Below, piece after piece: positions 9,322 through 62,067 of a stretch of 64,000 nt of DNA; position 1 is the stretch's first letter; each line of letters begins with the position of its first letter. The stretch is from assembly GCA_965202585.1 (NCBI GenBank), contig OZ241827.1, positions 58,280,001 through 58,344,000 on the forward strand, read 5' to 3'. The DNA comes from Thalia democratica (taxonomy: Eukaryota). The position numbers and the translations under genes are program-made. A model generated the notes under the pieces. It did not search any database and had not been told where the DNA came from. It was given only the letters and a program-made list of their open reading frames with translations.

Positions 9322-9394
9322 ATGATTTTAGGCAGCAGAACGTTTTCGATTTTGTTCGTTCTGGCTTTTGCCTTCAGCTCGACTTATGGTCAAG
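9322..9394 (+). CDS. Mucin exon 1: signal peptide [24 protein letters not shown]
   Basis: ATG at 9322, hydrophobic core, TYG-Q cleavage-like site, and a phase-1 donor GTTAGT that matches the phase-1 exon at 11313-11435 ([19 protein letters not shown]...). Confidence 0.8.
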
Positions 9395-12300
9395 GTTAGT
9401 TTTGGTTATTTTTATTTGACTAGAATGTAATAATTTATATGTTTTAGTATTTTGTTTATCAGAAAACTTTAGGAAAAAATATCAACTAGCTTCTAATTTT
9501 TATTTTTGTTAATTTAAATTATTAATTTGTATACTTTTGTTATAATTCCTCAAAAACTCTTTACTTTAAGTTATGTAAAATAATTTTAAAACTAATATAA
9601 CAAAAAGTAATGAAAAATTATAGTTTATGAATTTGAAATATTTTGCTTATCTAGTGCTTATATTTGAATATACGTAAACTTTAACTGTAAAGCTGTGTTT
9701 TTTTTTTTTATTATTAAAACATTAAAATTAAGTATAAAAATATGCTTAAACAAAGTTTTTCTCCATATTAGTACTCGTTGTAGTTATGGAAACCAATATT
9801 TGCTGTTACTTTGTTTCTGCACCCTACGTAATAATGATACGACAAATTTTCTTTATTCACCCTACCTTTATAAATCTAATTTTCTTTTAACGAACACAAA
9901 ACGAATGAACAAACTTTGTTTTCTTAAACAACAAAAGCGCAAGAAATAAATGTACATAGGCTTGGTTCTATTGTGTTGCAAAATGTTTTTTGTTATGTTA
10001 TTTGTTTACTTGTGAATAATGTGTTTCTAGTATAAGGGCTAAGTCATTGTACGTATAACTTTTCAAAAACTTATAAAAATAATTTAAAGGTATACAACAT
10101 ATAAATTAAAAAAATTTAAAACTTGAACCCGTTAATTATATAAGTTTGTTTTTAAAATCAGGCTAAAAAAGTAAACTCGAATATTATCCAAAAATTTTAA
10201 ATGTTACATACAAATTAAATGTCAAGAGTATATAGGTTGTATACTGAAAACGATCATAAACTTTAAAACCAATTTTAAAATGTTATTGTGTTTGAGAAAA
10301 AAAATTTTTGTAGTTATACATCATAAGGCAGAAAACTAAATACAAGTTTTTATTTTCTAATGTAAAGAAAATTAACCATTTGTATAAAATCTAAAGTCAA
10401 AAACCTTAATTTGGCAACGATTGCAATATGCATTTAAATTTTATGAAACAAATAACATTATTCTATAACTAAAGCAAAACATAAGAAATAAATTTTGCAC
10501 TGCTTAGCTTTTAGTTAGTAAATTACTTATTAGTTTTATGAAAGTATTTTTATAGTACTTAAAGTATTTCAAATAACTCGTCTACAAAACGAAAGCTCTT
10601 AAGTTTTTTTTTTATGTTACTAAAGTATCGAAAACAATTTACATTTTTTTTTAAACTCTTGTTCGTTTGTCCTTTGAATTGTTTAATTAACATGTAAAAA
10701 CTGCTGACCCGAAAACTTTCTTTAAGACAACTTAAAGTTTTTAAAAAACACTTCTAACGGAAGTAGATCATAAATTAATTTAATTTCAAAAAGCAAATCA
10801 ACTATAATATGAACAAGTATCAAATGTTTTTCAAGTGTTCTAATTACATAATTAAGAAAAAAAAACTATTATCTGTTTCACTTTGTGCAATAATTTAAAT
10901 AAAATAGTATATCGTTATATACACTTAAGTTTTTCGAAAAACATTGAAAAGTAGTTTTAAGGTATGAAAAGTTTCAAAAAAATTGTCATTACACAAACAT
11001 TTCCCAGCTTTAGTATCTTATTACATAAATATTGTTAAAACAGTTTATAAACTTAAACAACTTAAACAAAAGTATACATGTTAATTTTAATGACATCTTT
11101 AGTTTTCGTTTGCTTACTAAAACTTAAAACAGAAACTTAATTAACACAAAACTTTTTAAACTCAAAGTCAGTTACTTACTGGTCGAACGCTTTCATATTA
11201 TTTTTTGAAACAGTCACTAGTTTAACCTAATTTTAAGCAATTTCAAACAACCAATAACATATTATAAAACAGTTTAGGCAAACTAATAACTGATAGCATT
11301 ATATTTTAACAGTAAACAGTGGAAGCAACAGCGTGGTGCTGGTTGTGGATCAGTGCGATTCGACTTGTCTGCAGCAAGTGCTCAACCTACTCAACCAGGC
11401 AGCCAATGAAACCGATAGCAACTTCACTATAGCTGGTTAGATTGCACGCGTTTGCTGCAACAACTAAAACTGTTTTGTATAAGTGCTGTCATGTATCATT
11501 AATCAGTGTAGAGTAAAATTTCAAGTTTAATTTTTCTAGTTTAAAATTTATTCGTGTTTTATAAATGCAAACTCCTGTAATTGTGTTGTAAAAAAGTTGA
11601 GAAACTAGAACTACTTAAAAGTTGTAATTAAAACAGAAGTTACGACAAAATTTTAGTTTCAAACCATACTCTACTTATATTTTGAACAATTTAGACTAAG
11701 AAAAATATACTTTATTTAATAAAAGCTTTTTTTTAAAGTATACTCAATTACAAACAACATAACTTAATAGATAATGTAGTTCCGTAAAATTGTTTTATTT
11801 TTTTAATTGATACTGTATGTGAGTTATCTAATTTAATTGCTAACAACCTAAAAAATTAATCCTTAAAAAGTTTTTATCAAACTATAAGTTCAAAGAACTA
11901 AAAATAATGTTTTATAAAACTTTATGTACCTTAGTAATTTTTTTATATGCCTTAAAGTTCTAAGGTACAAAAGTAGTTAAATACACAATTTTTTTTTATT
12001 CTTTCATAAATTTACACTATTAAAATGTTTTCGATAATTAAGAAAATTAAAGTATTAAAAAGAATGATTACTTATAAAAAAGTTCCCTTATCTCAAAAAC
12101 AAAATTTTAAAACATTTTTATACTGTAAGCAGATCTAAATTGCAATAAAAAACTTTATTCTCACATTAGATACTTTTTTTTTCTAAACGATTAACAATGT
12201 GGAATGTGCAATGAAATAAGTATAACATAAAATGTTGCAAAATAAGCAAAACGTGAGTGTTCGAATGAAAAGAAAACTATTAATCAAATATTTAAAGACA

Positions 12301-15300
12301 ACTCAAATTTGGATGTGTAAAATGAATAAAAAAATATATAATGTAAAACACCTACAAATGTTGCAAAAAATGATTCATGTGTATGAAAAAGTGATGTCAA
12401 TTTTTATGTACAGTACAAATTACTTAGATTTGAATAAGTTTAAAGTGTTGCAAAGAAATATTGATCTGTATGAAAAAATGCATTAACAACTAAAAAAGTG
12501 ATATTAACATTGTTTCGACGCTTGAAAAACCGTCAGATTTGGATGAGTGCGCTTTCGTTGAGCGCGGAAACTGCTCGGAGTTCGCCCACTGCAACAACAC
12601 TTTCTCAACTTACTTTTGCGAGTGCAAGGCAGGGTTCACTGACACGAGCGAAGACGTTGTCAACTTGCCGGGAAGAAACTGCACTGGTGCGCATGTTTTG
12701 TTTGTATGAATAAGTTGTATGTGTTAAATTAACGTTGGTTAAAATTAAAGCTTGTTAACTGTTTGATAAGTTTGCATGCATATAACTGTATTAATCAGGA
12801 TACTTCTATGATTTTATTATGTTAAATTTTTGTTTAAAGTAATGTTAACCATTTGTTTTAATAAGACAAAATTAAAAAAACAAATATTTTTGTTGGTAAA
12901 AGAAATTTAATGTATTCAATGTATTTAAATGCATAAAAGTATTGAAACTATAGTAACTTAAAAATAAAATATATGAAATTATTAAGTTGAAATTCTTGTT
13001 TTTATTTCCATTGAGTTGTTGAAGAAATTAAACACTTTTGAATCTAACGTTATATGTTTTAATGCATGCGCACAAATTTTGAAACCAAAAAATAATAAAA
13101 AAGAGCTCTGAAGATTTTAAATGATTCCTGTAACGACCGCAGAACCAAAATAAATAAAAAACTGCTTGAACATTAAAAATTTGTAAAGTTATTTTTAATC
13201 GCTTCAACTTATACAAAGATATCAACGAGTGCCTGTCCAGCCCGTGCTTGAACGATGACCGATTGTGCGTGAACACCAACGGATCTTACGAGTGCGTGTG
13301 TCCCCAGGGATTCCAGGACCTCGTCCCTGGCGATCCTACTTCGGATTGCGTTGACACCGACGAGTGCCTGGATAACACAAGGTATTAAGAGTTTTTTATT
13401 TTATATTTATTTTATGATTTTTTTTTTTCAAAATAACCGGAACAAAAAAGTAGGCAATATTAGGTATTAAGTTTTAATGGTGAATGTTAGTTCAAAACTG
13501 TACAAGCGTTAAAGATTTTAAACATTTTAATTTTTTCAGGAAAAACAATATACAAACAAGTCAATGAGTAACTTTAGGTTTTTCAGTTAAAAATTAGTAT
13601 CAGTTAATTGTGTAAGCTACTTCAACTTAACTAGTCTAGAGCTATTCTGCAGAGCTTCTATTTTAATTTACAGCAAAATTATATTACTTCAAAAATATAA
13701 GCTGTTAAAAAAGTCAGTTGAACTATCTATTAGAAAATGAATTAAAACAATTTCACAGCTGCGTCGCCAACTCAACCTGCCAGAACTCGATCGGCAGCTA
13801 CAGTTGCGAGTGCGACGACGGTTACCATGGCGACGGGGTGCAGCAGTGCGATGACGTGGACGAGTGCAGCAGCCAGCAGGGGGCGTGCGTGGGCACCAAC
13901 GAAGTTTGCACTAACACTCCGGGGTCGTTCGAATGCGTCTGTGACCAGGGATACGACCGAGTCGAGGTGAACGGAACTTTCAGCTGCGTGAACGTGAACG
14001 AGTGTGAGTTGGGTAGGGATGATTGCAACAGGACCACTGAGGTTTGCGTCGACGTCCAAGGAGGATTCAGATGCGAGTCAGTTTGGATTTATTGTTTTAG
14101 GACAAGTACTTTGTAGTTATAGGAAATTTCGGCGCCATTGTGAAATTATTAAGTTTTGAGTTAGTCTGTTAAATGTCAGTCTTTTCAAGCGTTGAAAATA
14201 CAAAATTTAGTTTGATACTTGTCAATTTAGGTTGAGCCGTAAAATTGTAATTTTGTTACAATGTTATACCTTTTTTGCTTGAAATTCAAAATATTGTTAT
14301 TGAAACGGATATTTTAAATTTATATTAAACACTTTTTCTTAAAATTTTAAAGTATCATGTTTCTAAATTTAGATATAATTATTTTTTGTGAAACATGTGT
14401 AGTTGAAAATAATTGTTTATATGTCTTAACATTATTATCTATAGATATAGTTTACATGTTTTTAATAAAATAATTTCAAACATTTTTTAAGCTACCACAC
14501 CTATCTGCTGCCACGCTTCAGTAAAACTGCGTATAATGAAATAATTCCACGCCCTGATGAACATATATGCCAAAATATCATTTTCTAAATTTAAATTTAG
14601 CGCACTGTCACGTAAAAGCAAACTCTGAAATTTTAATTCAAGTATGAGTTTAACGTTTTTTTGAAGTAACCTTTCGTAAAAATAAGTAAAACAAATACAC
14701 AAAAGTTTCAAATTTTGTTAATTAGCATTTGACAAGCTACATACAAATGAAGATGTAGTTTAAGAAAGTAGACAATTGTTACAAATATAGCTTCTTAAAT
14801 GTTAATTTACTAAATTTAGAAAACTTTGTTGAACTTGTTTGCTTTTATTTAACTTTAAAACAGGAACCACCAAGCAACCCATTAAAACCAAATAAAATAT
14901 ATATTAAAAGATGATATGTTATTGCAAATTTATTAATAAAAAAACGATCGTATAGATTAATGATTTATGTAAAATATAAACTGTTGGTTTAAATATTTAT
15001 CACTTTAATCTTATTCCAACAATTTTTTACCTAAAAAGCAAATAGTTTGAATCTTAGTGAGTTAAATATTATAATATACTAAAATAAAATAACAACGAAT
15101 AAACAGGTTTGCCGACGGCTTCTCGTTTCTACAATTATTTTTTTTTAAATTTATATACTTTTATTTTCTTCCATTTTTTCATTAAATGTTTTTTCAATAA
15201 TATTCGTCTAATTATTAAAAAACATTAAGAGAAACGTAAAAAATTTAAGGCATTACTTGTTCCCAACAGGTGTGCCGACAGCTTCTCCAAAAAGCTGAAA

Positions 15301-18300
15301 ATTCTTATATCATAATACTAGTAATCATTTTTGTCGAATTTTAATTTAAATTCTTCGTTTTTTTTAACAAAAAGCCTATTGCAAGTCATCGTTTTTCTAA
15401 AAATGAAACTCATACAACAATGCATCATCTATGTTTTGTACGACACGATAACGCAAAGGTTCTTTCGTGCACCAGCTCCTTAAACCGAACTTTTTTGAGC
15501 GCTTTGCCATTTTTGTCGTTAATTATGCAATACTTATACTTCAATTATACATTTTAAATAACAACACCATTTAACACTCTACTTCAAACAGGTGTGCCGA
15601 CGGTTTCTCCTCGCTCACCAGGGAGCTGTGCGTCGACATCGACGAGTGCGAGATGGGGGGATTCTGCCCTCCGACCCACGCGTGCGTCAACGCCTTCGGC
15701 TCGTTCGACTGCGTCTGCAACTCCACCGACTGCGACAACTCGACCCACGCGTGCGACCTCGCCGACACGTGCGCCGGCAACTCGGTGTGCGTCAGGGTGG
15801 GAGCCGGACACAAGTGCGCGTGCTTGGAAGGTAAATTGTTTTAATTGATATATTTTTCTTTAGATTTTTTTGACAAAATTTAAATAATTTATAAATTTTA
15901 TTTAATTTTTCTTCGCAGTTTGGTTTGATCATCTATAAAATAGTTTAAAAGCCAAGTATATTAGAAAAAATATAACTTATTTCAAACATTTAAGTTATGA
16001 TCTAACCAAACTAGCTTTAAAAAAATTGACATCAGCGTATTTGAAAGCTAATAAAAAAATTCAAGTTATTGTGATTCATCCACACACTAATCAAAAATTT
16101 AAATTATCAAAATCAGCCCTTAATCCTCCGTTTCAAACCCACAGGTTACGCGCTGAACGTGAGCGGCGGATGCGAGAACATCGACGAGTGCAACGCCCAG
16201 CTCTCCTTGTGCTCCAGCGCGGCCAACTGCACCGACACCGACGGTTCATACACGTGCGAGTGTCGGGACGGGTACACGGGTGACGGGTTCAACTGCGAGG
16301 ATTTGGACGAGTGCCAGGGAAATCCCTGCGGCGAGAACGCCACCTGTATTAACCTATCAGGCAGCTTCGTGTGCGACTGCCGGCCCGGGTTTGAGGGAGA
16401 CGGGTACAACTGTTTCGGTTTGTTTTTTTATTGAAATTTTGTTTTTTTTGAATTTAAACGCTAAATGAATAAACAGAGAGAAACGAGTGCGAGGTCGACC
16501 CTTGCGACAACGGTGCCACTTGCGTAGACAGAATAAGTTCTTACGAATGCCTTTGCCCGCCTGGTTTCAGCGGACAAAATTGCTCTGAAGGTAAGTTAAC
16601 AAACCCTGTTTTTTTTGAACACTTTAAAACTTCTACTATTTTTCAGAACTAGTCTGCCAGCAAGAGTGCCATTGCAACGCTCGTTGCGTGTTAGGAGAAG
16701 ACAACCGGCCCAAGTGCGAGTGCATCCCCGGCTTCTGCGGAAACGGTACTTCGTGCAAAGGTATTAAAAGTTCTAACCTAAATTTTCAGCTATTTTTTCC
16801 ACACTAACTAAAACTTAATGCATTTTTACTTTAATAGCCGACATCCCTCTTCCGATGATACTCGCCCCGCCTTTCCCTGTCGACTTCGATGAAGGCAGCA
16901 GCCCCCCACCCGCCATGCTTCCTCCATTCCCGGACTTCGACGACGCAATCACAGCACCGCCGCCCATCACTCTCCCGCCTCCGTTCCCCGAAGACATGGA
17001 TGAAGGTGGTGAACCCGTTCCACCTATACTGCCTCCGCCCTTCCCCGAAGACGATGGCGAAAGCGAGAACGCTGGACCTGTTCCTCCCATCCTTCCACCT
17101 CCGATGCCCGAGGACGATGTACTGAGTGATAACAGTGGCCCGGTGCCACCAATATTGCCACCACCGATGCCAGAAGAAGAAGTTGAGGACTCGAAAGACA
17201 CTCCGCCGCCGATCATTCTTCTGCCACCACCATTCCCAGATGATGAACCGTCAAGCGATAACAGCGGACCGGTTCCACCTATACTACCACCACCCATGCC
17301 AGAGGACGAAGTTGAAGAATCCAAGGATCAGCCTCCACCAGTGATCTTACTACCACCTCCCTTCCCTGAAGACTTGGGAGAGAGCCAGACCAGCGGCCCA
17401 GTACCACCAATCCTGCCACCACCCATGCCAGAGGACGAACCGGAAGAGTCTAAGGATCAACTACCACCAGTGATCTTACTACCACCTCCCTTCCCTGAAG
17501 ACCTAGGTGAAAGCCAAAACAACGGTCCTACTCCTCCTATTTTGCCACCACCCATGCCTGAGGAAGAACCTGAAGACTCTAAGGATCAACCTCCTCCGAT
17601 CATTCTTCTACCACCTCCGTTCCCAGAGGACTTAGGAGAGAGTGAGAACAATGGACCAGTTCCTCCTATTCTGCCACCTCCTATGCCTGAAGATCAATCT
17701 GAGGAGTCCAACGATCAACCTCCACCGGTTATCTTGTTACCACCTCCGTTTCCTGAAGACCTAGGAGAAAATGAAAATAGCGGCCCTGTACCACCAATAC
17801 TGCCTCCTCCTATGCCTGAGGATCAACCTGAAGACTCTAAAGACACTCCACCACCAGTGATTTTGTTACCACCACCCTTCCCTGAAGACATAGGAGAAAG
17901 TGAGAACAACGGCCCAGTACCACCAATATTGCCACCACCGATGCCTGAGGATGAAACCGAAGAGTCCACAGGGCCACCACCAGTGATCTTGTTGCCACCT
18001 CCGTTCCCTGAGGATTTGGACGACGGCCAGAACAACGGTCCAGTACCACCGATCCTACCACCACCCATGCCGGAGGACGAAGTTGAAGGATCCAAGGATG
18101 AGCCACCACCGATTATTTTGTTGCCGCCACCGTTCCCAGAAGAGTTGGAAGACAGCAGCAGCGTCGCGCCTCCGCTTGTGCCACCACCACCTCCCCAGGA
18201 GGACGAGGAAGACGAACCACTTCCGCCCTTCCTGCCGCCGCCTCCGTTCCCCGAAGACGCATTCGTGGTTTGTGCTTTAAGTTGTTGGTTTCTGAGAAAT

Positions 18301-21300
18301 AAGAAAGCATAACTGGAAATGTTAAAAACTTTCAAGTGTAGTTTAAACAGTTTTTCGAGATTCATACAATGTGAACTTGTTTCACATACTCACTTATAAG
18401 CATTAATATAAATATAAACTGTTTTATCGGTTTTTCAGTGTGAAGACGGTGAAATCTTCGACGACAACATGTGCAAATGTATAGGTAAGAGAGCGTTTAT
18501 TAAGTTAACACATTTAAAACGAACTTTGTCAAATTAAATCAGCTTTTGTTATATTTTCAAACCACCATTGCCGTGTTCATCTAAACTCTTTTATATTCAG
18601 TTGTCGACGGTTGCCTGGCCCAAGGTGAACCTTGCAACGACGATGAGGTCTGCGTGGAAAGTTCTGGAAACTTCACTTGCGAGTGTCAATCTAACTTTGT
18701 TAAGTTCAATGGAACCTGCACTGGTAAGTTCGACCTGCGTTCAGTTTTTATGCATAAATTGACTGATTGCATATAGTTTTTTTTAATATATTGCTTTTTT
18801 CTTATTAGTTTTTGTCAAAATACTTTTACTGGATTTAAAATAACTAATTTATAAAAAAAAAACTGTTTAATATAATCTTGCTTGAATAGTTTAAATCATC
18901 CTAACAAACTGTTAGTAATATGTTGTTTAAGTCTTAACTCTTAATCTTTTAGTACAAAGCTACATTTGGTTTCAGTTTAACTAAGCAAATAATTTAAAAA
19001 TGTAGAAGTTAGCTGTTTGACGCACCCTGATGCTTGCAATGAAAATGAACAATGCGCTTTGAGTCTTGAAAGTGGAAACTATACTTGCGTCTGTCCTCAA
19101 GGGTTCACCAATGCCAGCGGAAACTGTAACCGTAAGTAAAGCTTACCATGCAGTAGAGTACTTTGAAATACAATTGTTTATAAAAAGACTGCTCTATGCG
19201 TTTTAAAAATTTTCAAATCAGGGTTTTAACTTTTAACTTATATCCAGCTACATGCGCTGAGCTGAGTTGCACGGCAGTTGAAGAATGCTTCGACACTCAA
19301 ATCGGCGGTCAGTGCGAATGCCAGCCCGGCTACGAACGAGACGAGAACAAAATATGCCAGCGTGAGTGATAAAACGTTTTTTTTTTGTAAAACCGAGAGA
19401 TTTCCTTTTTGTATACAATAAAGCTTTTATAAGCCTTCTAAAAGTGTCTATGAGTTCGAGTGGGATATCACATTATAAACAACATTATTCCTTTTTTTCT
19501 TGCAAAACTAAAGTTAAGTTAAAAAAATATAGTTTTTGTTTTGTTTACTTTTATGAGCGCTGTTTAAATGGAAGTTAATGAGTAAAATGTTTTGGTTTTA
19601 CATAGATTGTTTACGATAACTAAGCTAAGAGACTGAAATAAATTAGTTGTCGATGGATGCGTTGCAAACGGTCTTGAGTGCAGAGAAGATCAAATTTGTG
19701 TTGGAAACCAAATATCTGGAAATTACACTTGTTCATGCAGATCTAACTTTGTTGAATTTGAAGGAGTTTGCACTCGTAAGTTAATACTATTTTAGTTTTT
19801 AATTGTACTTTTATTAAAAATACTTTAAATTTCAGCTGTGAGTTGTCAGACACAGCCTGATGCTTGTAATGCAAACGAAGAATGTTTTTTGAATATTGAA
19901 AGTGGAAATTATACTTGTGTTTGCCCGCAAGGATTTACTACCTTTAATGGAATTTGTAACCGTAAGTAAAATTTCGATACAGTAAAAAAAAATGTTTTAA
20001 TTCATCTAAAAAAAAAATTAAACACATAAATGTATAACAATACAAGTTTTGCTTATATTTTGTTTAATAACATAGTTATTATGTATTAAGAGAAACTAAA
20101 TGAGTATTTTGCTGTTTGAGCTATAAATGTAGTTAACATTTGTTTAAACATTATTAGCAGTAAACATTTTTTAAACACTTTAATATAAAGATACGCTATT
20201 TATTTTAACAACAAAACACTTAAGTTTTTAGCGATCATCATATAACTGTTTTAAATTGATCAAAAAGGTTTATAGTTGATAATTTTACAGCAACTTGCTT
20301 GAATGTGAATTGTTCCACAAATGAAAATTGTGTTGATCTTGAAAATGGTGGACAATGTCAATGTAACGATGGTTACGAAAAAGATGAAGCTAATATCTGT
20401 CAAAGTTGGTTTTTTAAATTTTTCTAAACTTTACAGTATATAAGTTTTAAAGTTTTAGTTTGATTTAAAACAAAAACAAACAAATACTATAAAAGTTTTT
20501 GTTTTTGGCAAACCTGAAGTATGTATAGCTAAATCTAGATACTGTTAAACGTTTTATGAGTTTTTTAAAAACACTAATTACATTTTAAAGTTAAAAATTA
20601 AAAAAATAATAAAAACTATACTAAATACTCCTTAGTATAGGAAGCAAACATTCCATACACTTTGAACTTTTGTTACATAAACTATTTTAAAGCAGATATT
20701 AGTTTTATCTACAAAATTTTATTTTTATTAAGCTCTTATCTTAATGTATCATAAATTGACACGTTTTATAACTTTATAACTTTAGTTCATATGTATGTAC
20801 TAATTTATGATGCAACCAATAAAAGTTAATATATTCATCATCTCCAGTTGTTGACGGATGCGTTGCAGACGGTCTTGAATGCAGACAAGATCAGATTTGT
20901 ATTGGAAACCAAATATCTGGATACAACTGTTCATGCAGACCCAACTTTGTTGAATTTGAAGGAGTTTGCACTCGTAAGTTAATATTATTTTAGTTTTTAA
21001 TTGTACTTCTATTAAAAATATTCTTAATTTCAGCTGTGAGTTGTCAGACACATCCTGATGCTTGTAACGCAAATGAAGAATGTATTTTGAATATTGAAAG
21101 TGGAAATTATACTTGTGTTTGCCCGCAAGGATTTACTACCTTCAATGGAAACTGTAACCGTAAGTTAAACAAAAATATAGAACTTTTACAGCTAATGTAG
21201 TGAGTTTTAAATTCATGAGTTTTTATTTATGTTAACACAAAGTTATACTCTGATAATCGTACTAAGTGCCTTTCAAGCTTAGATTATAAACATATTTTCT

Positions 21301-36300: not shown

Positions 36301-39300
36301 ATATTCCAGTTGCACATGTATCGAGGGATTCACCTTCAATGAAACAGCCCTCAGTTGCGATGACAACGACGAATGTGTGGTTGAAAACGGTGGATGCAGT
36401 CATATTTGCACTAACTCACTAGGTTAGCTTATAAGTTGAAACAAAAGTTAAATACTTTTAATTAAGAGAAAACCTCTTGTAAAATATATTTTACAAAAAG
36501 GTACTGCAAACTTATTTAGTTGTTCAAATTTTTGACAAATTTCGTTGGCATCGATAGTACATTTTTTTGTAGTATATTAAAATAGTTAATTCCTTCTTTT
36601 TTATTTTGATTACCCTAGACTAAATTAAATTTAAGTCTTATTTTAAAATACAACCGACAATACAAATGTTTTGCAGGTTCTTTCGATTGTAGCTGTCCAG
36701 AAGGGCTGAGGCTTTCTTTGGACATGAAGACTTGCACAGACGTTGACGAATGCGATGGATCTCCTTGTCAGCAATTATGTGCAAACACTGAAGGTTCGTT
36801 AGTTTAAACAAATACTTGTAAAACGCTTATATTAAGTAATTTTAGCTATGAGTTATATAAACCGTAACATTTTTCAAATAATAAAATAATATTCTTTGCA
36901 TAATTATAATTTTGTGGTAAAAGTCCTTATAAGACCCGAACCAACTAACCTAGGACCTATATAACAAAAATAAATACTAACAACTTGCATTAACGTTTCA
37001 AGGTTCTTACGTGTGTTCGTGTGAGGACGGGTTCCTGCTGGTTGATGGCGTGAACTGCGAAGCAAACGTCACGTGTTCCAACGATGAAGCGCAATCATGC
37101 GTGAATGCGGCATGCAAGAGGAATGAGGAAGCTGAAGTCGTATGCGTCTGCAATAATGGTACGAATAGTTTGAACAACTTAGATTAGATATAGTTCGAAT
37201 TTTTAAATCTTCAATAATGCAGAATTTAAGTACTTTTTATTGATTTTGCTCAGTGTCGAGTGAAAATTTAGTTTTATTTAGACTAATAGATATTTTTTAG
37301 ATAACAATGGTTTTATTAAATTTGTGTACTTTCAAGAATAAAACTTTTAAGAATTCAACACTAATTATGTCTTACTATTAGTCCTTATAAACCTGGTAAA
37401 GGTTTTAAAACTTTCTTCTTTTATCTTTAAAAAAAATAAGTTCAAAATTACACTACATTTTCTAATACATACTACCATTTTTAGTTTTAAGATAATAAAA
37501 CTTATCTATAAGTAACTAACTAAGCAAACTCCTTTTACTATAAGATTATGTATGTTTGAGTTCTTTCAATCGTAACAACACCATGATAAAATAATTTTAA
37601 AGGGTACGAACAAGTGAATGCAACATTCTGTCAAGACATCAACGAATGTAACGGTAATAACACTTGCGATGCAAACGCACTGTGCACAAACACTGATGGT
37701 TCTTATGAGTAAGTTTGCATTTTCTTTTGCCGGACAAAAACACTCTGTTGTTTTTAAATTAATTGACTGTTTAAAAAATAATATCAAAAACTATTCTAAC
37801 TTAATTTTTCCGGTTCTAATTTTTTGAACATTGCTAGTTTTTTAAGAAAAAGTTGTTTAAACGTTAAATGTTTATTGGAATCAACTTTTAAGGTGCCTTG
37901 TTTTGGTACTGATTTCCTTAACCATTGCTCATATGTATAAGTAAAATATTCTAATGATGCCGAAAAATAAAAATATTTAAAAAAAATCACAGGTGTCAAT
38001 GTAACGAGTACTTTGCCTCTCGGTCTGAACCAAGCGGAAGGGTTTGCACAGGTAAGAGCAGCAAAAACGCCGTTAAACTTTAACAAACTAATAAGTTGTA
38101 CATGCTATTTTACAAAAGGCTAGTAGATGAACAAAATTGAATACATTTAATTTTAACAGAGCTCACGCCGCCAGTGGTCGCTGTTCCGGTTGTGGTTTAC
38201 AACAACGTCACCATCACGTGGAGCTCCGTGTCCGTCGGACAGTTCTTCGAGTGAGTTTCAAGAAATAATATTTTCCACCAGTTAAGTTATTAGGAGGTAT
38301 GAATTTATTTTTTTCAGCATCTACCTGCAGCTGGACGGAATTGAAACTCGCCTGTTCGAGCAGAGGCTCAACTCGACACAGACTTCGATCACCTTCACCG
38401 GTCTCGACCTCTCTTCAACGTACAGATGTAAGCCTTTTATTTTGAATCATTTTATTTTAACTAAGTTGATTAAGAAGCCTTAAATGCATAAAACGAAAAC
38501 AGTTTTATTAAAAATCGTGATTTTTAAAATAACTAAAATATTGTTTAATAAGCTACTTTATTTTTATCAGTTTTTATTGTGACTGCTTTTGGTGAAGCCT
38601 TGAGCAGACCCGCTCAGCAGTCTTTCAAGACTCCCGAAGGTCTCAGTCCACCGACATTCGAGAGCATTAACCTTGTTGAAGATGTTACTAGCAATAGTAT
38701 CACTGTGAGTTTTAATAAATGCTTGTATCTTTACTCCTTTTTGGTGATATACCTTTTTATTTTTTCTAGAAATTTAAAAACCTTCTCTGATGTTAAAATT
38801 TGTTAGTAGTTCACTTTAAACAAGAAAAATCAAGTTTGTTGCATTTATTTATGTTACTTTTTTTTTCATTCTCGCTTTAGGTGAGCTGGGTACTTTCGGA
38901 AACATCTCCTGCTATAGGATTTAGATTGAATGTTACAGAGGAAATTTCAGGAGATCTAGTCAGACAAACCGGTCCTTCCATTGGCGCTAAATCCGTTAGT
39001 TACAACGCTTCTATGCTACTATGTTGCTAATAAATTAGTTATTTTTATTCCTAGTATACCTTCGATGAATTGAGTCCTACAACTCTGTACCGTTTCTCAA
39101 TTGCAAGTTACGTTGGGGAGGAAGTTAGTGAAGTTAGAACAGTCACACAGTACACAGGTTTTTAATATTTTTCTGGTTTTTAGTTTTGTTTTATTTCGTA
39201 AAAAAAAATTGGCAAAAACTTTTGCAGTTAATCCTTTTAATATCTTGATATTTGAAGAAGTACTTTTAGCCAGTTTCAATTGTCTTACTTTCACTTGTCA

Positions 39301-42300
39301 TTAAAATACAAACTTTTAAATAATAACTTGAGAATTTATTTTCAGACTTGCTCTTCATGCAGTACAGCTAAATAGTTTATTTAAATTATCCAAACAGCTC
39401 CCGAGGCACCGACGAATCTTGTCATAACAACTGACTCGGTCGTTTACACGAACGCTCAGCTGTCATGGTCAGCACCAGTTAACGGTAGCGTTGACAGTTA
39501 CCTGGTCAGTACAAGGCCCGAGGTTGAAGTTTCTGTAGGTAAGTGTATGATGTGTGAGTCACTTAAAAAAACTAGTAAGGAATTTTCGATTCATTTAACT
39601 TTTCCTAAAAACTTTTATTATAAAGTATTATTTTATAGTTCAAAAATTTTTATATAGTGTTTTTTTACTTCAAGAGTTTTGTTTTTTTTCAAGTATATTG
39701 AATCAATGAAATCAATTTCAACTACCTTATAAGAAAATTTATTCAAATATTTTTTCAGACAACAACTCGAGAACAGCAAGTATCGTTGGTCTTGTGCCAG
39801 GCCGAACTTACTCCTTCACCGTTACTTCTTTTTTCCAAGGAATTGAAAGCGCGGGCGCAGTACTAACACGTGAGATTTTTTTTAAAGTAAAATCTAAGCT
39901 TATCCAAAATATTAAAACACACAAAGTTATTTACAACGTAAAACACTAATTGATTCGTATATTGACTTTCTCAAACTGCAAAAAACGTACTACTTATACG
40001 AAAACGTGCTTAAATAAACAAAAACAACGAGTTGTTAATCGGTTGGATAATTTTAACCTACAACTGTAAATACACATTTAACAGATGTACTTCCAGTTAC
40101 ACCCACTCCTGTTACAACTACTCCGGAAACAACAACAGATGGTAAGTTTTGGCAAGTAAGAATAACAAAACAGAGTCTTTAGAGAAATCGAAGAAAAAAT
40201 GTACAATTTATACTTTAAATAAATGAATTAAGCAATTGTTTGAACTTAGTTTAAAAACATTGTTCTAGAAAAAAAAAATTTAATGTTGGGGTTCTTTTGT
40301 GATGAATAAGACAATTTGAAAAATTAAAAGTAAAAACAGTTGCACAAAAAACAAACTAATATCTTTCAATTTCACAATATAAAAGTCAACAACTTAAACT
40401 AATGTTCAGTTATACATTAGTATTCAAACTTTATATAATAGACATAAAAAAAAAACAATTATGAGTTTAATTTTAAGTTTAAAAATTAATCATAAAGAAT
40501 TAAAAATGAACTTAAAAACAAGTGTAGTGATAATTAACGCCTTCAAAAAACTTTACACCTCATAATGACAATAGGACCTATTATAATCACAACAACTGAG
40601 GATCCTTTGGTTACCACGACAACTGAAGAACCTGTTGTTACTACGACAACTGAAGAGCCTATTGTTACTACGACTACTGAAGAACCTGTTGTTACTACGA
40701 CAACTGAAGAGCCTGTTGTTACCACGACAACTGAAGAACCTGTTGTTACTACTACAACTGAAGAACCTGTTGTTACAACGACAACTGAAGAACCTGTTGT
40801 TACTACGACAACTGAAGAACCTGTCGTTACTACGACAACTGAAGAGCCTGTTGTTACTACGACAACTGAAGAGCCTGTTGTTACTACGACTACTGAAGAG
40901 CCTGTTGTTACTACGACAACTGAAGAGCCTGTTGTTACTACGACAACTGAAGAGCCTGTTGTTACAACGACAACTGAAGAGCCTGTTGTTACCACAACAA
41001 CTGAAGAACCTATTGTTACTACGACAACTGAAGAACCTGTTGTTACTACGACAACTGAAGAACCTGTTGTTACTACGACAACTGAAGAACCTGTTGTTAC
41101 TACTACAACTGAAGAACCTGTTGTTACAACGACAACTGAAGAACCTGTTGTTACTACGACAACTGAAGAGCCTGTTGTTACTACGACAACTGAAGAACCT
41201 GTTGTTACTACTAACACTGAAGAACCTGTTGTTACAACGACAACTGAAGAACCTGTTGTTACTACGACAACTGAAGAGCCTGTTGTTATAACGACAACTG
41301 AAGAACCTGTTGTTACTACTACAACTGAAGAACCTGTTGTTACAACGACAACTGAAGAACCTATTATTACTACAACAACTGAAGAACCTGTTGTAACTAC
41401 TACAACTGAAGAACCTGTTGCTACTACAACAACTGAAGAGCCTGTTGTTACTACGACAACTGAAGAACCTGTTGTTACCACAACAACTGAAGAGCCTGTC
41501 GTTACTACGACTACTGAAGAGCCTGTTGTTACAACGACAACTGAAGAACCTGTTGTTACTACGACTACTGAAGAACCTGTTGTTACTACGACTACTGAAG
41601 AGCCTGTTGTTACAACGACAACTGAAGAACCTGTTGTTACTACGACTACTGAAGAACCTGTTGTTACTACGACTACTGAAGAACCTGTTGTTACTACGAC
41701 AACTGAAGAGCCTGTTGTTACCACGACAACTGAAGAACCTGCGGTTACCACGACAACTGAAGGTACTGGTTAAGACTAAGGATGCACTTGCGGCTGCATG
41801 AAGAAGTATTGGCACACTTACTACAAAAGCTTGGTATCAAAATTAATAAAATCTAACAAAGGATTATTACAGATTGTTTGTTTTAACCACTAACAAAAGT
41901 TTTGTGTTCGCACTGATAAGCATGAATTTTTAGATGGCTAGTTTTAACTTTGTTTAACTTTGCCAGCTTAAAGTTGTGTTTTTACTAAAAAGTAGTTGTT
42001 AGATTTTTTTTGTTAACATAGATTAGTTTTACAGGTTTACTTCGTTGAAAGAGCGCTAGTGTATAGTAAGCTTTGACAAACATAAAACAACATTGATTAC
42101 ACTAACACTACAATCAGTCTTAACATATTTTCTAAAATTATTTGCTTTTTATACTCGTGACCAACCAAATGTTTGTTACAACTTAATGTATGTTTGTGTT
42201 CATGTGCATATCAAATTTGTTGTAAACACTTGCTTTTAAATGCATCCATGAATTGTGAAAAATAAGTATCTATGACGTTTAAGTTTTACTATCTACTTTT

Positions 42301-45114
42301 CAATCTTTTTTAATGATTTAGTAAAAAAAATTATATTAAATTTTAAATAAATTATCTAAAACAAAAACTCCAAACAGTCTACATATTAAGTTTGTTCATG
42401 TTCTTGAAACAATGCATGTTTTTATAAAATTTTGCTTAAATGAAAAATTTTTGTTTCCATAAAAAATAATAATACACAAATACTGCAACACTGAAAAGCT
42501 ACTTGAAACTAACAACAAAACAAAACAAACAAAGCTAAATTTTAAAATAGTGAATTTTTTTTTTAATATATATAATAATTAATATATATATAATATTTTT
42601 AAAGATATTCTTCTGTGAATTTTAACAACGTTGATTAAATTGTTTGCCAAAATCAAAAAATTAAGTGTAATTGCAAGTCTGTCTGTGTTATGTTCTACTT
42701 GTACTATTTTAATAAAGTTTACACTTTTTTTTCTGTGCACACCTAACCTTACAAAAACATCTTAGTAACTCCGGCTCCAGTCGTCTGCTCAGGATTTGAA
42801 GTTGCCCTCAACGGAACGTGTGTCGGTAAGTTTCACTTTTAACTATTTTTCTTAAACTTAAAACAATCACTGTCAACTTTGATGCTTGCAGAAACAAGCC
42901 GGTTCGAACTCACCATTACTTTCGATTCGACTTTCGACGAATCTCTCACAAACAGCAGTTCGAGCGGATACCTCGATTTCCTCGCCCGCTACAATCAGCT
43001 GGTAATAAACTAGAAAAAATATAACCTAGATATATATTAAAATCATTAACGTTTTTATTGCTGTAAAACATAAAGTCTAATCGACAGCTTTAATTTGTGT
43101 GTACAAGCAAACTAAACTTCACTGTGCAGTCTATTGAACAAAAGTAGAAAAAAACTTTTGAATAAAACATATAAATTATACTATTATTCGGACTGTCACT
43201 CTAACTTCCTTACTATACGACAAAAACTAAAAACAGGTGAAACAAATACTCGACACGCTCAACCTCAGCTACGTCAGCATCGACTCCGTGACTCTGTCGA
43301 GCGGAAGCGTCATAGCAACGTCTGACGTCATGGTCGTCAACGACGATTCGTTCACCACCACCGATGACGTCATAAGAAATATCAACGAGACGTTCGTCAA
43401 CGACCCGGCTACTTCCGGTTTGGCAGCCAGCATCAACGCGGTCGCTGTTGGCGTCATGGGTTTGTAACTATATATCGTCTATTAGAACTTGTGGTTCTTA
43501 ATAATTTATTTTCTAGTTCTGTTTTGCTTTCGTAAGCGTTAACCTAAACCGATAGAGCTGTTTATATAAACAACTAAACTAAATACATTCAAAACTTATA
43601 ATGAATAAAATTAATATTCGAAATCTATTCAGTTTCAAAAAATAAGATTTTTTACTGTTCGCTACTAAATCTAAAACGTTTCCAGCAATTGACGAGTGTT
43701 CAAGCTCTGATGCCAGATCTACGTGCAACTCAACTTTCGCCCAATGTTCCAACACAGACACCTTCCCTAATTTCGCTTGCAGCTGTAAGGATGGGTACAC
43801 AGACCTTGATACCACCAACCCCGGTACAAAGTTGGTAAAGTTTTTGCTTTTTATTGCTATTTTTTTACCTATTGTTTAAGACTGCTAAGTTAAGACCTGT
43901 TAAGTTTGGTATAAAGTAAAATCTGTAATACTATTACTTTTTTGATCAATACTACTTTTTATAGATTATTTTTATTTATTTTGTACTTGTTTAGAAAGTT
44001 ATAATAAGAGGTTGAAACGTAAGCAAAGTCTTTATTAGATATAAAGTTATAAGATAAAATATTAAAGTGCTTTATTTTCTAAGCAAAAATATTTTGTGAG
44101 TTCAAAAACTATTTTAGAATGCACATTTAAAACAAAACTTATTATTCAGCTGTGAGCTGACGCCCGTTGCAACAACATCAGAACCAGTAGAAACAACATC
44201 AGAACCAGTTGTAACAACCACTGCACCAGAAGCGACACCTTTTATCACTACAACTACTCCACTGAGATGTCCTGATGGGTTCCGTGACAGAGACCCAGAA
44301 AATCCCGGAACAGAGTAACTTACATTATTTTTTGCGTTAAAGTTATTAAATTTTTGTTCTATCATGGCGTATATACTTATGACATTGTTTGTTTTGATAA
44401 GAATTTTTAAATATAATTAAGTGCCTTTTTAATTCTAAACAATTGAAGTAAGTTAAAGGCATTTTGAGTAGTATTTTTCCACTTGTAACCAGTGTATATA
44501 ACTAGCTTTGTATACGCGAACAACTCTAAAACTTTGCCATGCACTTTATTTACTACGAGCACTAAACATAAACGCTTATGAATCAAACTGTCAAACAACT
44601 TTCAGCTGCGAGGATCAGTGCTTGTTGGACGGAGCTGACTACTGTCAGAACGGAGCGACTTGCACGAGGAGGCCCGCCGAAGAGAACCCGGTGTGCGTGT
44701 GCGGTACTTGGTACACTGGCGACCGTTGCCAGTCACTCAGTGAGTTCAATTGGACTTTGATAACTTTTAAATTAATTAGAAAAATCCTAAAGTATTTAAA
44801 AGAGTAAGTCATTGAATTTAAAAACTGTTATAAGCAAAAAGAATCAGGCACACTTGTGACCGCTGAAAGCTATTTTATTGAGTGTTTTTGAACATAATAT
44901 TTAGAACGTGTTTTATATAAAATAACTTGTTCCAAAAAACATAAAATCTTTAACTAGTTTGGAAATAAAATAAGTTTGTGAAAAAACACTTGTGAACTAA
45001 CTAAACGTATATTTAGTAAGTACAGCCGCCCTATGGACATTTGGAGTCAGAGGTCAGAATTTTTTTGTGTGAAATCATCATTCACACATTATAGATAAAT
45101 TCATTAAGTTTATC

Positions 45115-45150
<36 letters not shown>

Positions 45151-48100
45151 GTATACATCTATATATCACATTTTGTCATTAGTTCGAGCATTTGAGTTTA
45201 GGGACTTCACCTAGCCTACAAATATTCATATAGTATAAACGTATTAAAAGTAAAGTAACTAAAAAAAAATAATTTCGTTTACGTTTTAAAAGCTTAAATG
45301 CATATGCTGCTAAAAATTATTTTTGAAATGATGTAAAACTAGATAGTTAATCTAAAATATGTTTGAAATTGAATAAATTTCAACAAATTTACTTTAAACT
45401 TTATAAGAATAAATTTATCTTAAATATCTTCTGAGCTTTTTAATAACATAACGATCACAGTTCTTTTTTGGGTTTTTATTAACTAAAGAGTGCTTGTTTC
45501 ATTTTGTTACTAACCCACTAACATTTCTTTTATAAAATACTAAAAGCATTCTATAAAACCTTTTGATAATGTAAAAAAGTTAGCCGTTTAACATTTTTTC
45601 TTCTATTATTTTAAACTTAAAAAAAAGTGATAAGTGAGACGCTATAAAGCTGTAAACGCATATACTTGTTCTAAATCAATGTACATTTTGACTAATTAAA
45701 GGAACTGTGCACGTTTAAAACGATTGCTTCAGCTTAAAATCAATTATTGTGTTTTTGCTTTTAGAGTCTCGCTAATCATCTAAGCTTTTTAATGATGCGA
45801 GAAACTATTTTTTTAAACTTTTATTTACTATTTTCTGCATACTACTAAAACATTTTGTTCCTTTTTTAAATTTTACTGTTTTTGTTAACATTCATTTACT
45901 TACTAACAAATATTGTATTTAAGTGTTAGATTTTTTTGTGTGTTTTAAGTTTTTTAAAACATATATTTAGTTTTTGCTTTAAAAAAATAAATTAGAAAAT
46001 TTTTAAATCTTTGACCTCTTTTTGTTTGTTTTAACTTTTAAACACATATAATCAAATTTTTTTTGTCTTACACTTTCAATTTTTTTTATACTAAATGCAC
46101 GTTTTTTATAACTCTTTTTCTTACGACTAACAAAACTTTCAATTTTCTCGTTGACCCTACAGACCCCCTGCTGATCGGGCTGATATGTGGACTGGTGGTA
46201 GCTGTGGTTGTTATTCTCATGCTCACTGTTGCCGTCTGCACCAAGTAAACACAAAACTTCCAAAAATTCCGCCAAATTTGTAGTGGCATAGATGCTATAG
46301 TGCTTTGATTGAATTAAATTGCTCTACACTTTAGAAAGTCTTGTAGATTTAGTGCATGTTGTTTTGAGATTTTACTATTTACTTACAATTATTTTTTAAC
46401 ATTTAATTTGTTTAAAAATTATTCTAATAAAGTAATCATAGATCTACTTGCAATAATTATGATAATTACTTTCTTTACTGTTATATACTTTTTCATTTTA
46501 AATAAAATCGTACTGAAGAACCAAAAAACTAAACCAAAAGTTAACAAAAGGAATAAAGATAATTTTTACTAACAATCTTATTTCTAAGGTATTAAAAAAA
46601 TACAATTTTCGCGACAGACGACGGCTTATAAAAAATAAAGATATTTGTTTTAACCAAATACCAAAAACTACCAAATAGGTTTGTTTGAGTGTGTATTTTT
46701 CAAATTTGAACTTTGTCTTTAAAAATGCAAAGATTGTAGTTAAACCCATATTTTTGAATATATATAATTTGTGCAAACATTATTATTATTTTATGCATAG
46801 AAAAAAAAACTTTTATTGTAACAAAAAGTTTTAATGCAGTTTAGTAGCATGAATTAGTAATTGTCACAAAAAAAAAATTGAAAACTTAAGTTTGTTAAAA
46901 AAAACTAGTAGCTGTTTTTTCTTTAGTATTTTTCAAAGTTTTTAAACATTGTAGTATTTTTTATAGTTAAAAATAATTAATTGTTAAATCCACTTGTAGC
47001 AAATGGTTTTACATAATACAAATGATAAAAAATGTTTTAATTTTAAATTACAACATCTTTTAAGTCATAGTAACAGAAAATTCATACAAAACTTAAAATA
47101 TCTTCTATTTGACATTTTTTAACCTGAAATAGTTATAAAACCGTCTTTAACAACTTTATTTTTCATATTTCACCAGTATTAAAAAAGCAGTTTAGCATAG
47201 CATTAAAAAAAAAATTTAGTAGTTTTTATTTATTTTTACCTACTTATTTGTATCATATATTATATGTTGCATATACTATAGGTGTGTTGCATATACTGTA
47301 GATTTAAAAAAAATTCACAACAAGTCTAAATTAAATAATAAAAATATTTAGCAAGCTTTTAGACGTACAAAACTAAATTCCATCCCCACATCACTTTCTG
47401 TTTTTTTATTTAAAAGCAGCTAAACACGAAATAATTATTAATTATAGTAAAGTATCAATGGTTGTTTATTTTAACAAACTCTTATGATTCTTAGCTTTCA
47501 AAGTACAAAAAAAAATTCTTGTTGACTATTTCTGAAAGTTATTTTGTTGTAAAATTTTAGTAAGTTTAATTAAGCTTTGTATCAATTTTTTCATAGAAGA
47601 AAAATCTCAATAATTTTTAAACACAGTATTTTTTTCTCCACCAGACGGCGCGCTCGTAGCAGGAGTAGTTATTGGAATCCTGGCAGGAATTATCGTCATC
47701 GTGGCCATTATGGTGGTAGTGTGGGTTCGGGTTATTCGGACCGATTCCACCGCCTTCCTGCATGATGACACCACCAAACAGAGAGCTCAGCTTTACAGGT
47801 ATGTTTGTTATATATACATATTTTTTTTTGGATTGTTTCGATGACTTTGTATATGTTTTTATGGTGTTTTTTATCATCTTTTTAATTTTTATATTTTTTC
47901 AGTTTGTATACAAAATGTTTTATAAGTCTTATACTCAATTGTTAAGCAATATAAATCCTTTTGTTTGGCTGAAGAACTTTTGACCAATTTAAAGTGACAA
48001 AATCAAAAGTTGTCAAAAGCTTAAGAAATTTTAAGATAAACGGTAATAATTAGAATTATGTTTTACCATAAACTTAGCTTAAAATTTTAAAGTTATTTTT

Positions 48101-48261
48101 TGGAGTCAACTAAAAAATATTGATTGTAGGCAAAACCGTTAACTTAAATATAGAAAATTTAATTTAAACTCAAACAATTATTAGAAAAGTTTTTTTTTAG
48201 GCCAGCCGATATCAACGAATCAGGAAACGTCAAAACTGTTTCTCATCGTGACCTGGTGTGA
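9322..48261 (+). CDS. Giant EGF/NIDO/AMOP/VWD/FN3/PTS/SEA type I transmembrane mucin-like protein (77 exons with the TM-B1 ending, about 4,340 aa)
   Basis: Manually assembled chain of GT-AG exons with continuous phases. The summed length (13,026 nt) is divisible by 3. Starts with a signal-peptide exon and ends in a TM exon plus a stop. Domain evidence is listed in the sub-features. Confidence 0.88.
12537..16760 (+). CDS. Mucin N-terminal EGF block, mostly calcium-binding type. Exons 12537-12686, 13219-13381, 13759-14076, 15592-15830, 16145-16417, 16477-16590, 16647-16760
   Basis: Repeated D(I/L/V)(D/N)EC...C...CxNTxGSYxCxC motifs. Confidence 0.92.
16838..18267 (+). CDS. Mucin exon 10: 1.43-kb proline/acidic repeat domain (eight 42-43-aa units [43 protein letters not shown] plus degenerate flanks)
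   Basis: Acceptor TTAATAG at 16837 (phase 1). Continuous ORF to a phase-0 donor that matches the phase-0 exon at 18439-18484. Confidence 0.85.
18601..24703 (+). repeat. Tandemly amplified three-exon (A-B-C) non-calcium EGF cassette. A at 18601, 19647, 20848, 21763, 22887, 24247; B at 19006, 19836, 21034, 21950, 23169; C at 19248, 20291, 21435, 22342, 23643
   Basis: All exons are phase 1-1 and 114-132 nt long. The central copies are nearly identical (VDGCVA.GLECR.DQIC / [15 protein letters not shown] / [13 protein letters not shown]), and parts of their introns are too. Confidence 0.9.
24966..27414 (+). CDS. Mucin second EGF block. Exons 24966-25097, 25305-25424, 26103-26281, 26472-26682, 26941-27068, 27267-27414
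   Basis: DIDEC/DINEC EGF-Ca motifs and classical EGF cysteine spacing, in frame across GT-AG junctions. Confidence 0.9.
27656..29586 (+). CDS. NIDO domain. Exons 27656-27788, 28515-28744, 29067-29221, 29388-29586
   Basis: Motifs [35 protein letters not shown] and [19 protein letters not shown]. Confidence 0.85.
29717..30994 (+). CDS. AMOP domain. Exons 29717-29844, 30131-30245, 30388-30564, 30875-30994
   Basis: [10 protein letters not shown]...ACPPT...D..F, CF...TCCYD..GSLL and DCC..S....WC..YQQKRP, placed between NIDO and VWD as in MUC4-type proteins. Confidence 0.85.
31146..32930 (+). CDS. VWD domain. Exons 31146-31255, 31429-31639, 31699-31884, 32021-32200, 32452-32621, 32816-32930
   Basis: [59 protein letters not shown] and FAESWRV...SLFTY. 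Confidence 0.8.
33388..34026 (+). CDS. Cadherin-like/Ig-like domain followed by the start of an EGF. Exons 33388-33549, 33848-34026
   Basis: NTAPSF...[14 protein letters not shown]...GLFSWTP...FYAAD, then [10 protein letters not shown]. Confidence 0.7.
34268..38051 (+). CDS. Third EGF block (10 exons, 34268-38051)
   Basis: [11 protein letters not shown]...[12 protein letters not shown] followed by repeated DVNEC/DINEC/DIDEC/DVDEC EGF-Ca units. Confidence 0.9.
38160..39869 (+). CDS. Three fibronectin type III repeats (7 exons, 38160-39869)
   Basis: VTITWS...[13 protein letters not shown]; SITVSW...[16 protein letters not shown]; [16 protein letters not shown]...[15 protein letters not shown]. 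Confidence 0.85.
40575..41762 (+). repeat. Mucin PTS exon: about 44 tandem 27-bp units encoding EEPVVTTTT
   Basis: ORF 40565-41773. Acceptor ACAATAG at 40574 (phase 1). Donor at 41763, or 6 nt later at 41769. Confidence 0.93.
42892..43459 (+). CDS. SEA domain with intact G|SVI motif. Exons 42892-43011, 43237-43459
   Basis: [27 protein letters not shown]...[23 protein letters not shown] is at 43303-43314. Confidence 0.85.
43686..44739 (+). CDS. Juxtamembrane EGF region with a mini-PTS insert. Exons 43686-43830, 44150-44314, 44606-44739
   Basis: AIDECSS...CSCKDGY..NPGTNC; [17 protein letters not shown]; YCQNGATC...[13 protein letters not shown]. The last exon ends in phase 1. Confidence 0.88.
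45117..45150. repeat. (ACAT)n(AT)n microsatellite in a mucin intron
   Basis: Directly visible. Confidence 0.9.
46163..46678 (+). CDS. Anchor cassette TM-A: TM exon 46163-46244 ([28 protein letters not shown]) plus candidate tail exon 46618-46678 ([19 protein letters not shown])
   Basis: Phase-1 acceptor CCCTACAG before a hydrophobic helix; phase-2 donor GTAAAC overlapping an in-frame TAA. The tail exon has TACTAAC about 45 nt upstream of GCGACAG and gives a KRR stop-transfer. The tail exon is less certain than the TM exon. Confidence 0.7.
47645..48261 (+). CDS. Anchor cassette TM-B1: TM exon 47645-47798 ([51 protein letters not shown]) plus terminal exon 48201-48261 ([20 protein letters not shown])
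   Basis: Phase-1 acceptor after a long pyrimidine tract, GTATGT donor, in-frame phase-2 terminal exon, and AATAAA at 48316-48321. Confidence 0.85.
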
Positions 48262-61973: not shown

Positions 61974-62067
61974 GTTTACGTTAGTTCAAACACCTGTTAA
62001 AAGTATACCTACTGCTTTCAGAGCTGATAAACTTTTAGTTAACTTGTAACAAGTATTAGATTCTACA

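Follow-up and report, generated by a model that had tools for sequence, protein, structure and literature searches.

The 64,000-nucleotide (nt) stretch of Thalia democratica DNA analysed here (the window; contig OZ241827.1 of assembly GCA_965202585.1, positions 58,280,001 to 58,344,000 of the forward strand) carries one real, at least partly expressed large gene on its + strand, at 9322..48261 in window coordinates. The gene encodes a MUC4-like transmembrane (TM) glycoprotein with a probable SEA-EGF anchor. The explanation that we favour, and consider rather probable, is a single gene for a type I transmembrane surface glycoprotein of about 3,900 to 4,300 residues, with the architecture and mechanism proposed below. 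Its largest mucin-like element, a Thr/Glu repeat exon (the PTS exon), is an optional cassette exon and not a fixed part of the protein, being skipped in the only RNA contigs that cross its site and missing from L004, an ENA metagenome contig.

The gene was modelled with a splice-aware dynamic programme over 8,500-49,500, with GT-AG introns, tracking of phase, a table of codon log-odds and generic matrices for the splice sites. With generic parameters the best chain ran on the + strand from an ATG at 9322 to a stop codon at 48259-48261, with 71 exons encoding 4,071 amino acids (aa). A retrained pass contributed six extra EGF-type exons, each phase 1 at both ends and with good splice scores, and the final model of 77 exons and 4,317 aa has no internal stop and a single terminal one. 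Under the same parameters the chain reached a score of 1871, the reverse complement 420 and three locally shuffled copies 55-76; an open frame across 77 exons is far beyond chance. Looser retrained settings produced tiny exons and totals of 82-103 exons, and were rejected as overfitting. The window as a whole is AT-rich with short GC-richer blocks, and its + strand is rich in short open pieces with EGF-like Cys patterns. A preliminary description of this DNA had proposed one continuous frame of about 4,340 aa over 77 exons, and the independent chaining recovered it with the same ends and exon count; the order of modules proposed along one long gene is likewise supported by the gene model. From the list of domains given there, the EGF units, the Pro/acidic repeat, the Thr/Glu repeat and the TM segment stand. 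NIDO, VWD, FN3, the cadherin-like domain and SEA were found as sub-threshold or lead-level matches, and AMOP is represented by eight Cys only.

RNA evidence for the 3' part of the gene came from two marine metatranscriptome runs (X1 and X2) containing part of the stretch, which were overlaid on 41700-47699. In each run one long RNA contig (1,082 and 1,061 nt) falls into pieces that match the boundaries of six modelled exons to the base, namely 42766-42825, 42892-43001, 43237-43459, 43686-43830, 44150-44314 and 44606-44739. In DNA runs the introns are covered too, and contigs of X3 and X5 span the intron downstream of the PTS exon. The RNA contigs extend 221 nt upstream of 42766; the 30 nt compared match 40111-40140, the final 27 being identical (40114-40140). 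This identity indicates that exon 40085-40141 is spliced straight to 42766, so that the FN3 side and the SEA side lie in one RNA from which the PTS exon has been skipped. In L004 (93% identical; L004:1-130) the sequence of 40124-40174 runs directly into about 42606-43766, and that wild genome is therefore without 2.4 kb (40175-42605) containing the whole PTS exon.

The PTS exon is built on a 27-nt period encoding the 9-aa unit TTTEEPVVT, present in 43.4 copies at 91% match according to Tandem Repeats Finder (TRF), with 44% T and 21% E. Its two splice sites score weakly (0.5 and -0.5), and the intron sequence flanking it is unique in the genome. Relatives of the Thr/Glu repeat, 64-84% identical, lie at C1:104034982-104082102, C10:26128356-26129045, C10:35717262-35723439 and C115:60690-67715; these loci probably represent a group of related mucin-type genes, from which the cassette may have come. 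The constant Thr-rich part of the protein is limited to the 54-aa exon 44150-44314, in which the X1 contig has 21 extra in-frame nt, a repeat-number variant. When the PTS donor is left unused (41768-41773), the frame ends at a TAA two codons on, and such read-through could possibly give a secreted form without SEA and TM. JGI metagenome contigs were scanned twice, with a spliced junction and with a conserved exon word, and no match was obtained.

The 77-exon model has a single strong hydropathy peak, at aa 4246-4261. Two TM exons, A and B, each shift the carry from 1 to 2. Either one leads in frame into the tail exon, which provides for two TM helices, with tails of 22 or 48 aa and the same ..HRDLV end; by phase the two exons are mutually exclusive. 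RNA contigs of 139 nt in both runs cover exactly 46163-46244, that is exon A, with 29 and 28 nt lying elsewhere as short spliced flanks, and RNA depth was also observed over the start of exon B (bin 47500-47699). The main RNA contigs go no further than 44739, the branch point that precedes the choice of TM exon. The segment 47562-48894, which takes in TM exon B together with the tail exon and some 600 nt of 3' flank, is duplicated 11 kb downstream at 58603-59958 with 94-99% identity, and no upstream exons of a second gene were seen between the 3' end and this duplicate.

Domain scans were done exon by exon, and the non-EGF domains are cut into exons of 20-76 aa; this splitting over small, singly scanned exons may account for their sub-threshold scores. 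In the 4,317-aa model the putative AMOP falls at about aa 2245-2395, the He_PIG-type domain at about 2730-2830 and the probable SEA at about 3988-4098. Two colinear exons matched Pfam NIDO, one at 13.8 bits (profile 19-51), the other at 16.1 bits (profile 102-148); neither reaches the 25-bit cut-off by itself, though their rough sum exceeds it. P0001, a wild fragment with 72% identity, also matched NIDO, at 15.5 bits. Pfam VWD matched the first VWD exon only, at 14.1 bits (profile 6-32). There is no Cys across about 285 aa of the VWD region, and the VWD of MUC4 is likewise without Cys (PMC1552070); GDPH is absent from the entire model, with LDPQ at aa 2410-2413. Between NIDO and VWD, about 140 aa hold exactly eight Cys. 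The AMOP domains of MUC4 and SUSD2 contain four strictly conserved disulfides (PMC12000326), and since eight Cys is the number that would form them, and they stand at the expected position, this segment is a putative AMOP domain. Further along, Pfam fn3 matched the two halves of the third FN3 domain at 22.9 and 17.7 bits and the second domain at 15.1 bits; the first had no Pfam fn3 match on its exons and was read from its sequence pattern only. These sub-threshold NIDO, VWD and fn3 matches fall in the expected order along the gene. For the Ig-like domain, all ten best named Atlas clusters were He_PIG, Big_9 or cadherin-like, at a score of 0.83, below the tool's 0.9 line, and BLASTP of its exon against a bacterial cadherin-like protein was not significant. 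We treat the He_PIG/cadherin-like assignment as a lead and not as proof.

In the EGF arrays, Pfam EGF_CA reached 3.8e-22 and 78.7 bits on exon 13760-14074, and the whole model holds 35 CxC..G[FYW] motifs and 16 DxD/NEC motifs. In the Pro/acidic repeat a period of 129 nt encodes a 43-aa unit, in about 6.7 copies by TRF (P 34%, E 13%, D 9%), and a query with its exon found no homologue of 262-833 aa. A three-exon EGF-like unit is tandemly duplicated at 19790-23030, the copies being 88-95% identical with introns included; the duplication may be recent, or the array may be hard to assemble.

For the probable SEA domain, two of the three best named Atlas clusters, those ranked 2 and 3, are SEA clusters, at a score of 0.83, again below the tool's 0.9 line. 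The SSGSVIAT motif is invariant in five sequences (the window and four wild fragments), with G-S-V-I in a predicted beta-hairpin. The larger SEA exon is 91% identical to that of a more distant contig, L006, as against 72-79% for the introns. From these sequence features, a SEA domain is probable and cleavage at G|S is predicted. A word-index search with the SEA exon returned only 76-78-aa genomic fragments.

Several results weigh against the single-gene, SEA-anchored glycoprotein. Upstream of 40085, continuity from the N-terminus through NIDO-AMOP-VWD to FN3 is carried by the open frame and by nothing else, and the RNA link between the FN3 side and the SEA side depends on 30 of the 221 upstream nt. 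Exon-sized queries (the NIDO exon and the SEA exon) retrieved no full-length relative from protein libraries. For AMOP (PF03782) there was no hidden Markov model match on the four exons and none in a genome-wide six-frame search, while one AMOP exon found no paralogue in its own genome and gave chance matches only against solved structures. The Ig-like domain had no Pfam match on its exons and never reached a family threshold. For SEA (PF01390), neither exon had a Pfam match and the genome-wide six-frame search matched another locus only; the SEA exon and a five-sequence profile gave chance matches only against solved structures, and AlphaFold of the larger SEA exon alone (74 aa) had a pLDDT of 45.6 and was unusable. 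The similar Thr/Glu repeats at other loci also mean that short RNA contigs on the repeat are no proof that the PTS exon is used.

These results bear on three other explanations. It is possible, though doubtful, that the protein is not functionally a mucin but an adhesion or matrix receptor of the MUC4/SNED1 kind, into which the Thr/Glu exon came as a recent, rarely used or lineage-specific insertion. The skipping of this exon in RNA, the absence of 40175-42605 from L004, the weakness of both splice sites and the presence of similar repeats that could be its source would all fit such a protein; but the exon is open and frame-neutral with 43 units at 91% match, X3 and X5 DNA contigs cover its downstream intron, and the short Thr-rich stretch 44150-44314 is constitutive. 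We think it unlikely that the alpha/beta module at 42892-43459 is an unrelated or new fold, without SEA-type self-cleavage. Its location between the PTS exon and the EGF-TM segment is the SEA position in membrane mucins (PMC9080433), and both the Atlas ranking and the G-S-V-I hairpin point to SEA, against an Atlas score under the tool's line and the failed Pfam, six-frame (at the locus) and structure searches. That the model fuses at least two neighbouring genes (for example an EGF/Pro-rich secreted one, a MUC4-like one and an FN3-SEA-TM one) through symmetric phase-1 exons that chain fortuitously is improbable: most EGF exons are phase 1/1 and do chain trivially, exons upstream of 40085 are without RNA evidence and several splice sites score poorly, yet there are zero in-frame stops in 4,317 codons, the NIDO-AMOP-VWD and FN3 exons use all three phases and still fit, no second signal peptide was seen in the model, and the RNA contigs unite the FN3-side linker exon with the SEA side.

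In the single-gene explanation that we favour, the protein would be ordered from the outside inwards as cbEGF rods, a proline/acidic spacer, EGF-like units, NIDO-AMOP-VWD, an Ig-like domain, a further cbEGF rod and three FN3 domains. On the membrane side would follow the optional Thr/Glu O-glycosylation cassette, then SEA, an EGF unit, a short Thr-rich stretch, a second EGF unit, the TM helix and a short tail (Table 1). Such a protein may project from the apical surface of an epithelium as a long glycosylated rod stiffened by calcium. The SEA domain is predicted to cleave itself at G|S during folding, which would leave the ectodomain held non-covalently and able to be shed under force, as in membrane mucins of the SEA type, and the VWD appears to have lost the GDPH cleavage site used by MUC4. 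Inclusion, skipping or loss of the PTS exon, together with the choice of TM exon, could tune glycan load and anchoring.

Table 1. Features of the gene at 9322..48261, with positions in the window and the basis of each assignment.
Feature	Position	Strand	Basis
Exon 1: start codon and signal peptide, 24 aa	9322..9394	+	Start of best chain; hydrophobic N-terminus ending ..TYGQ
Exon 2: 40-aa segment	11313..11435	+	Gene model
EGF/cbEGF array I, 8 exons, about 11 units	12537..16760	+	Pfam EGF_CA; DxD/NEC and CxC motifs
Pro/acidic repeat, single exon of 1,430 nt, 476 aa	16838..18267	+	TRF; composition
Six-Cys EGF-like exon array, three-exon units, partly recent tandem duplicates	18439..25424	+	Gene model; direct repeats
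EGF/cbEGF array II, 4 exons	26103..27414	+	Gene model, Cys motifs
Probable NIDO domain, 4 exons	27656..29586	+	Two colinear Pfam exon matches
Putative AMOP domain, 4 exons, eight Cys	29717..30994	+	Position between NIDO and VWD; Cys count
Probable Cys-free VWD and linker, 6 exons, LDPQ replacing GDPH	31146..32930	+	Pfam VWD on first exon
Ig-like / cadherin-like (He_PIG-type) domain (lead), 2 exons	33388..34026	+	Atlas feature search
EGF/cbEGF array III, 11 exons	34268..38051	+	Gene model, DxD/NEC motifs
Three FN3 domains, 7 exons	38160..39869	+	Pfam fn3, sub-threshold
Thr/Pro linker exon	40085..40141	+	Last 27 nt are the RNA contig sequence directly upstream of exon 42766
PTS exon, 1,194 nt, frame-neutral	40575..41768	+	TRF; weak splice sites
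Short Cys-bearing linker exon	42766..42825	+	RNA-exact in both X1 and X2
Probable SEA domain, 2 exons, SSG|SVIAT	42892..43459	+	RNA-exact exons; Atlas lead; motif
cbEGF after SEA	43686..43830	+	Pfam EGF_CA 21.2 bits; RNA-exact
Mini Thr/Pro/Glu stretch	44150..44314	+	RNA-exact
Membrane-proximal EGF	44606..44739	+	RNA-exact; last exon in both long RNA contigs
TM exon A, 82 nt	46163..46244	+	RNA contigs; in frame with tail exon
TM exon B, 154 nt, longer juxtamembrane segment	47645..47798	+	Hydropathy peak; same phases as exon A
Tail exon and stop codon, ..HRDLV*	48201..48261	+	End of best chain

A search of the whole library with the NIDO exon returned exon-sized wild fragments only, plus two unrelated bacterial proteins. 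Other NIDO loci of the genome were inspected in case a paralogue had larger AMOP/VWD exons; one proved nidogen-like and another carries a Sushi-like exon, and neither was helpful. A nidogen-like gene lies on the minus strand at C2:72415001-72445000 (L010, L007, L009), with NIDO at 72 bits, a G2-like exon, EGF exons and several CWCV thyroglobulin-type exons. Within the window, a 392-aa open frame (3813-4988, minus strand) lies in a GC-richer block upstream of the gene. Downstream are two minisatellite arrays of 17-18-nt units (CACTTTTGCACGAG-like) at 52064-52885 and 54882-55581, and a 149-aa open frame (61539-61985, minus strand) whose C-terminal half resembles histone H3 and whose N-terminal part is unusual.

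Sea-anemone mucin4-like proteins of four species, including Actinia tenebrosa, combine NIDO-AMOP-VWD with a C-terminal SEA, and others carry FN3, CUB or ZP (PMC9080433); coral mucin4-like proteins add TSP1 (PMC4890752). On the domain assignments proposed here, the cnidarian proteins with SEA would share with the present gene NIDO-AMOP-VWD, SEA and TM in one protein; other members of the cnidarian set carry FN3, and the PTS varies in length. They differ in that they are transcript models, likened by architecture, in which FN3, CUB or ZP is N-terminal, and a Pro/acidic repeat, an Ig-like domain and long cbEGF arrays are not described for them. SNED1 recalls the order proposed here, with NIDO, then a long EGF/cbEGF array, then three FN3 domains (bioRxiv 10.1101/440081), but it is secreted, has Sushi, is without AMOP-VWD, PTS, SEA and TM, and is described from vertebrates only; in our model a TM is present, no Sushi was seen and the FN3 domains are followed by further domains. 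Where PMC9080433 turns to origins, it cites a hypothesis that MUC4 descends from a SEA-bearing ancestor and later lost SEA, and PMC4948705 cites earlier work in which proteins resembling mammalian Muc4 reached no deeper in the animal tree than Xenopus. Our literature search turned up no tunicate paper on a protein of this kind.

With vertebrate MUC4 the gene would share the NIDO-AMOP-VWD order and a Cys-free VWD, and it has, as MUC4 does, EGF units and one TM beyond the module, then a short tail. In MUC4 the PTS lies N-terminal to the module, cleavage is at GDPH, and there is neither SEA nor FN3, whereas the present gene has LDPQ at the GDPH site, a Thr-rich PTS that is C-terminal and optional, a probable SEA, and an N-terminal repeat rich in Pro, Glu and Asp. 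Mucins of the MUC3/12/13/17 type share the order of PTS, SEA with a G|SV motif, adjoining EGF units, TM and short tail, but are without NIDO-AMOP-VWD, FN3 and long cbEGF arrays, and the SEA of the present gene is so far only a lead. To our knowledge MUC1 has no EGF units. The preliminary description had named a MUC1-type SEA anchor, of which the probable SEA survives and the type does not: SEA followed by EGF, a mini-PTS and EGF resembles MUC3/12/13/17. It had also placed the PTS membrane-proximal to the MUC4 module; the position C-terminal to the module is supported, but the PTS is not a fixed part of the protein, being skipped in RNA and absent from L004. Its suggestion that the full combination may be undescribed is weakened by the published pairings of NIDO-AMOP-VWD with SEA or with FN3 (PMC9080433), although the exact full set (N-terminal EGF arrays, Pro/acidic repeat, Ig-like domain, three FN3, PTS and SEA-EGF-TM) was not found in the searchable literature. 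The full set looks like a variant within a known modular family and not like a new kind of protein. The points of most interest in this analysis are a mucin exon that is optional or polymorphic, the loss of GDPH while the SEA motif is kept, and the alternating TM exons.

Two lines of membrane mucins, SEA and MUC4, are usually distinguished, and sea anemones have supplied most of the argument for a link between them. If the domains hold, a tunicate gene with both parts would bring this link inside the chordates. The optional PTS exon offers a concrete example of how splicing or a 2.4-kb indel can switch a mucin domain on or off, and the paired TM exons are a second switch. More tentatively, and we regard this as a long way from likely, a chordate may here retain MUC4 in its proposed ancestral state, in which one protein carries both NIDO-AMOP-VWD and a self-cleaving SEA anchor, and its mucin exon may have been caught in the course of being gained or lost. 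If this is true, the loss of SEA from MUC4 would be dated to the vertebrate stem, and a surface receptor would become a mucin by one exon.

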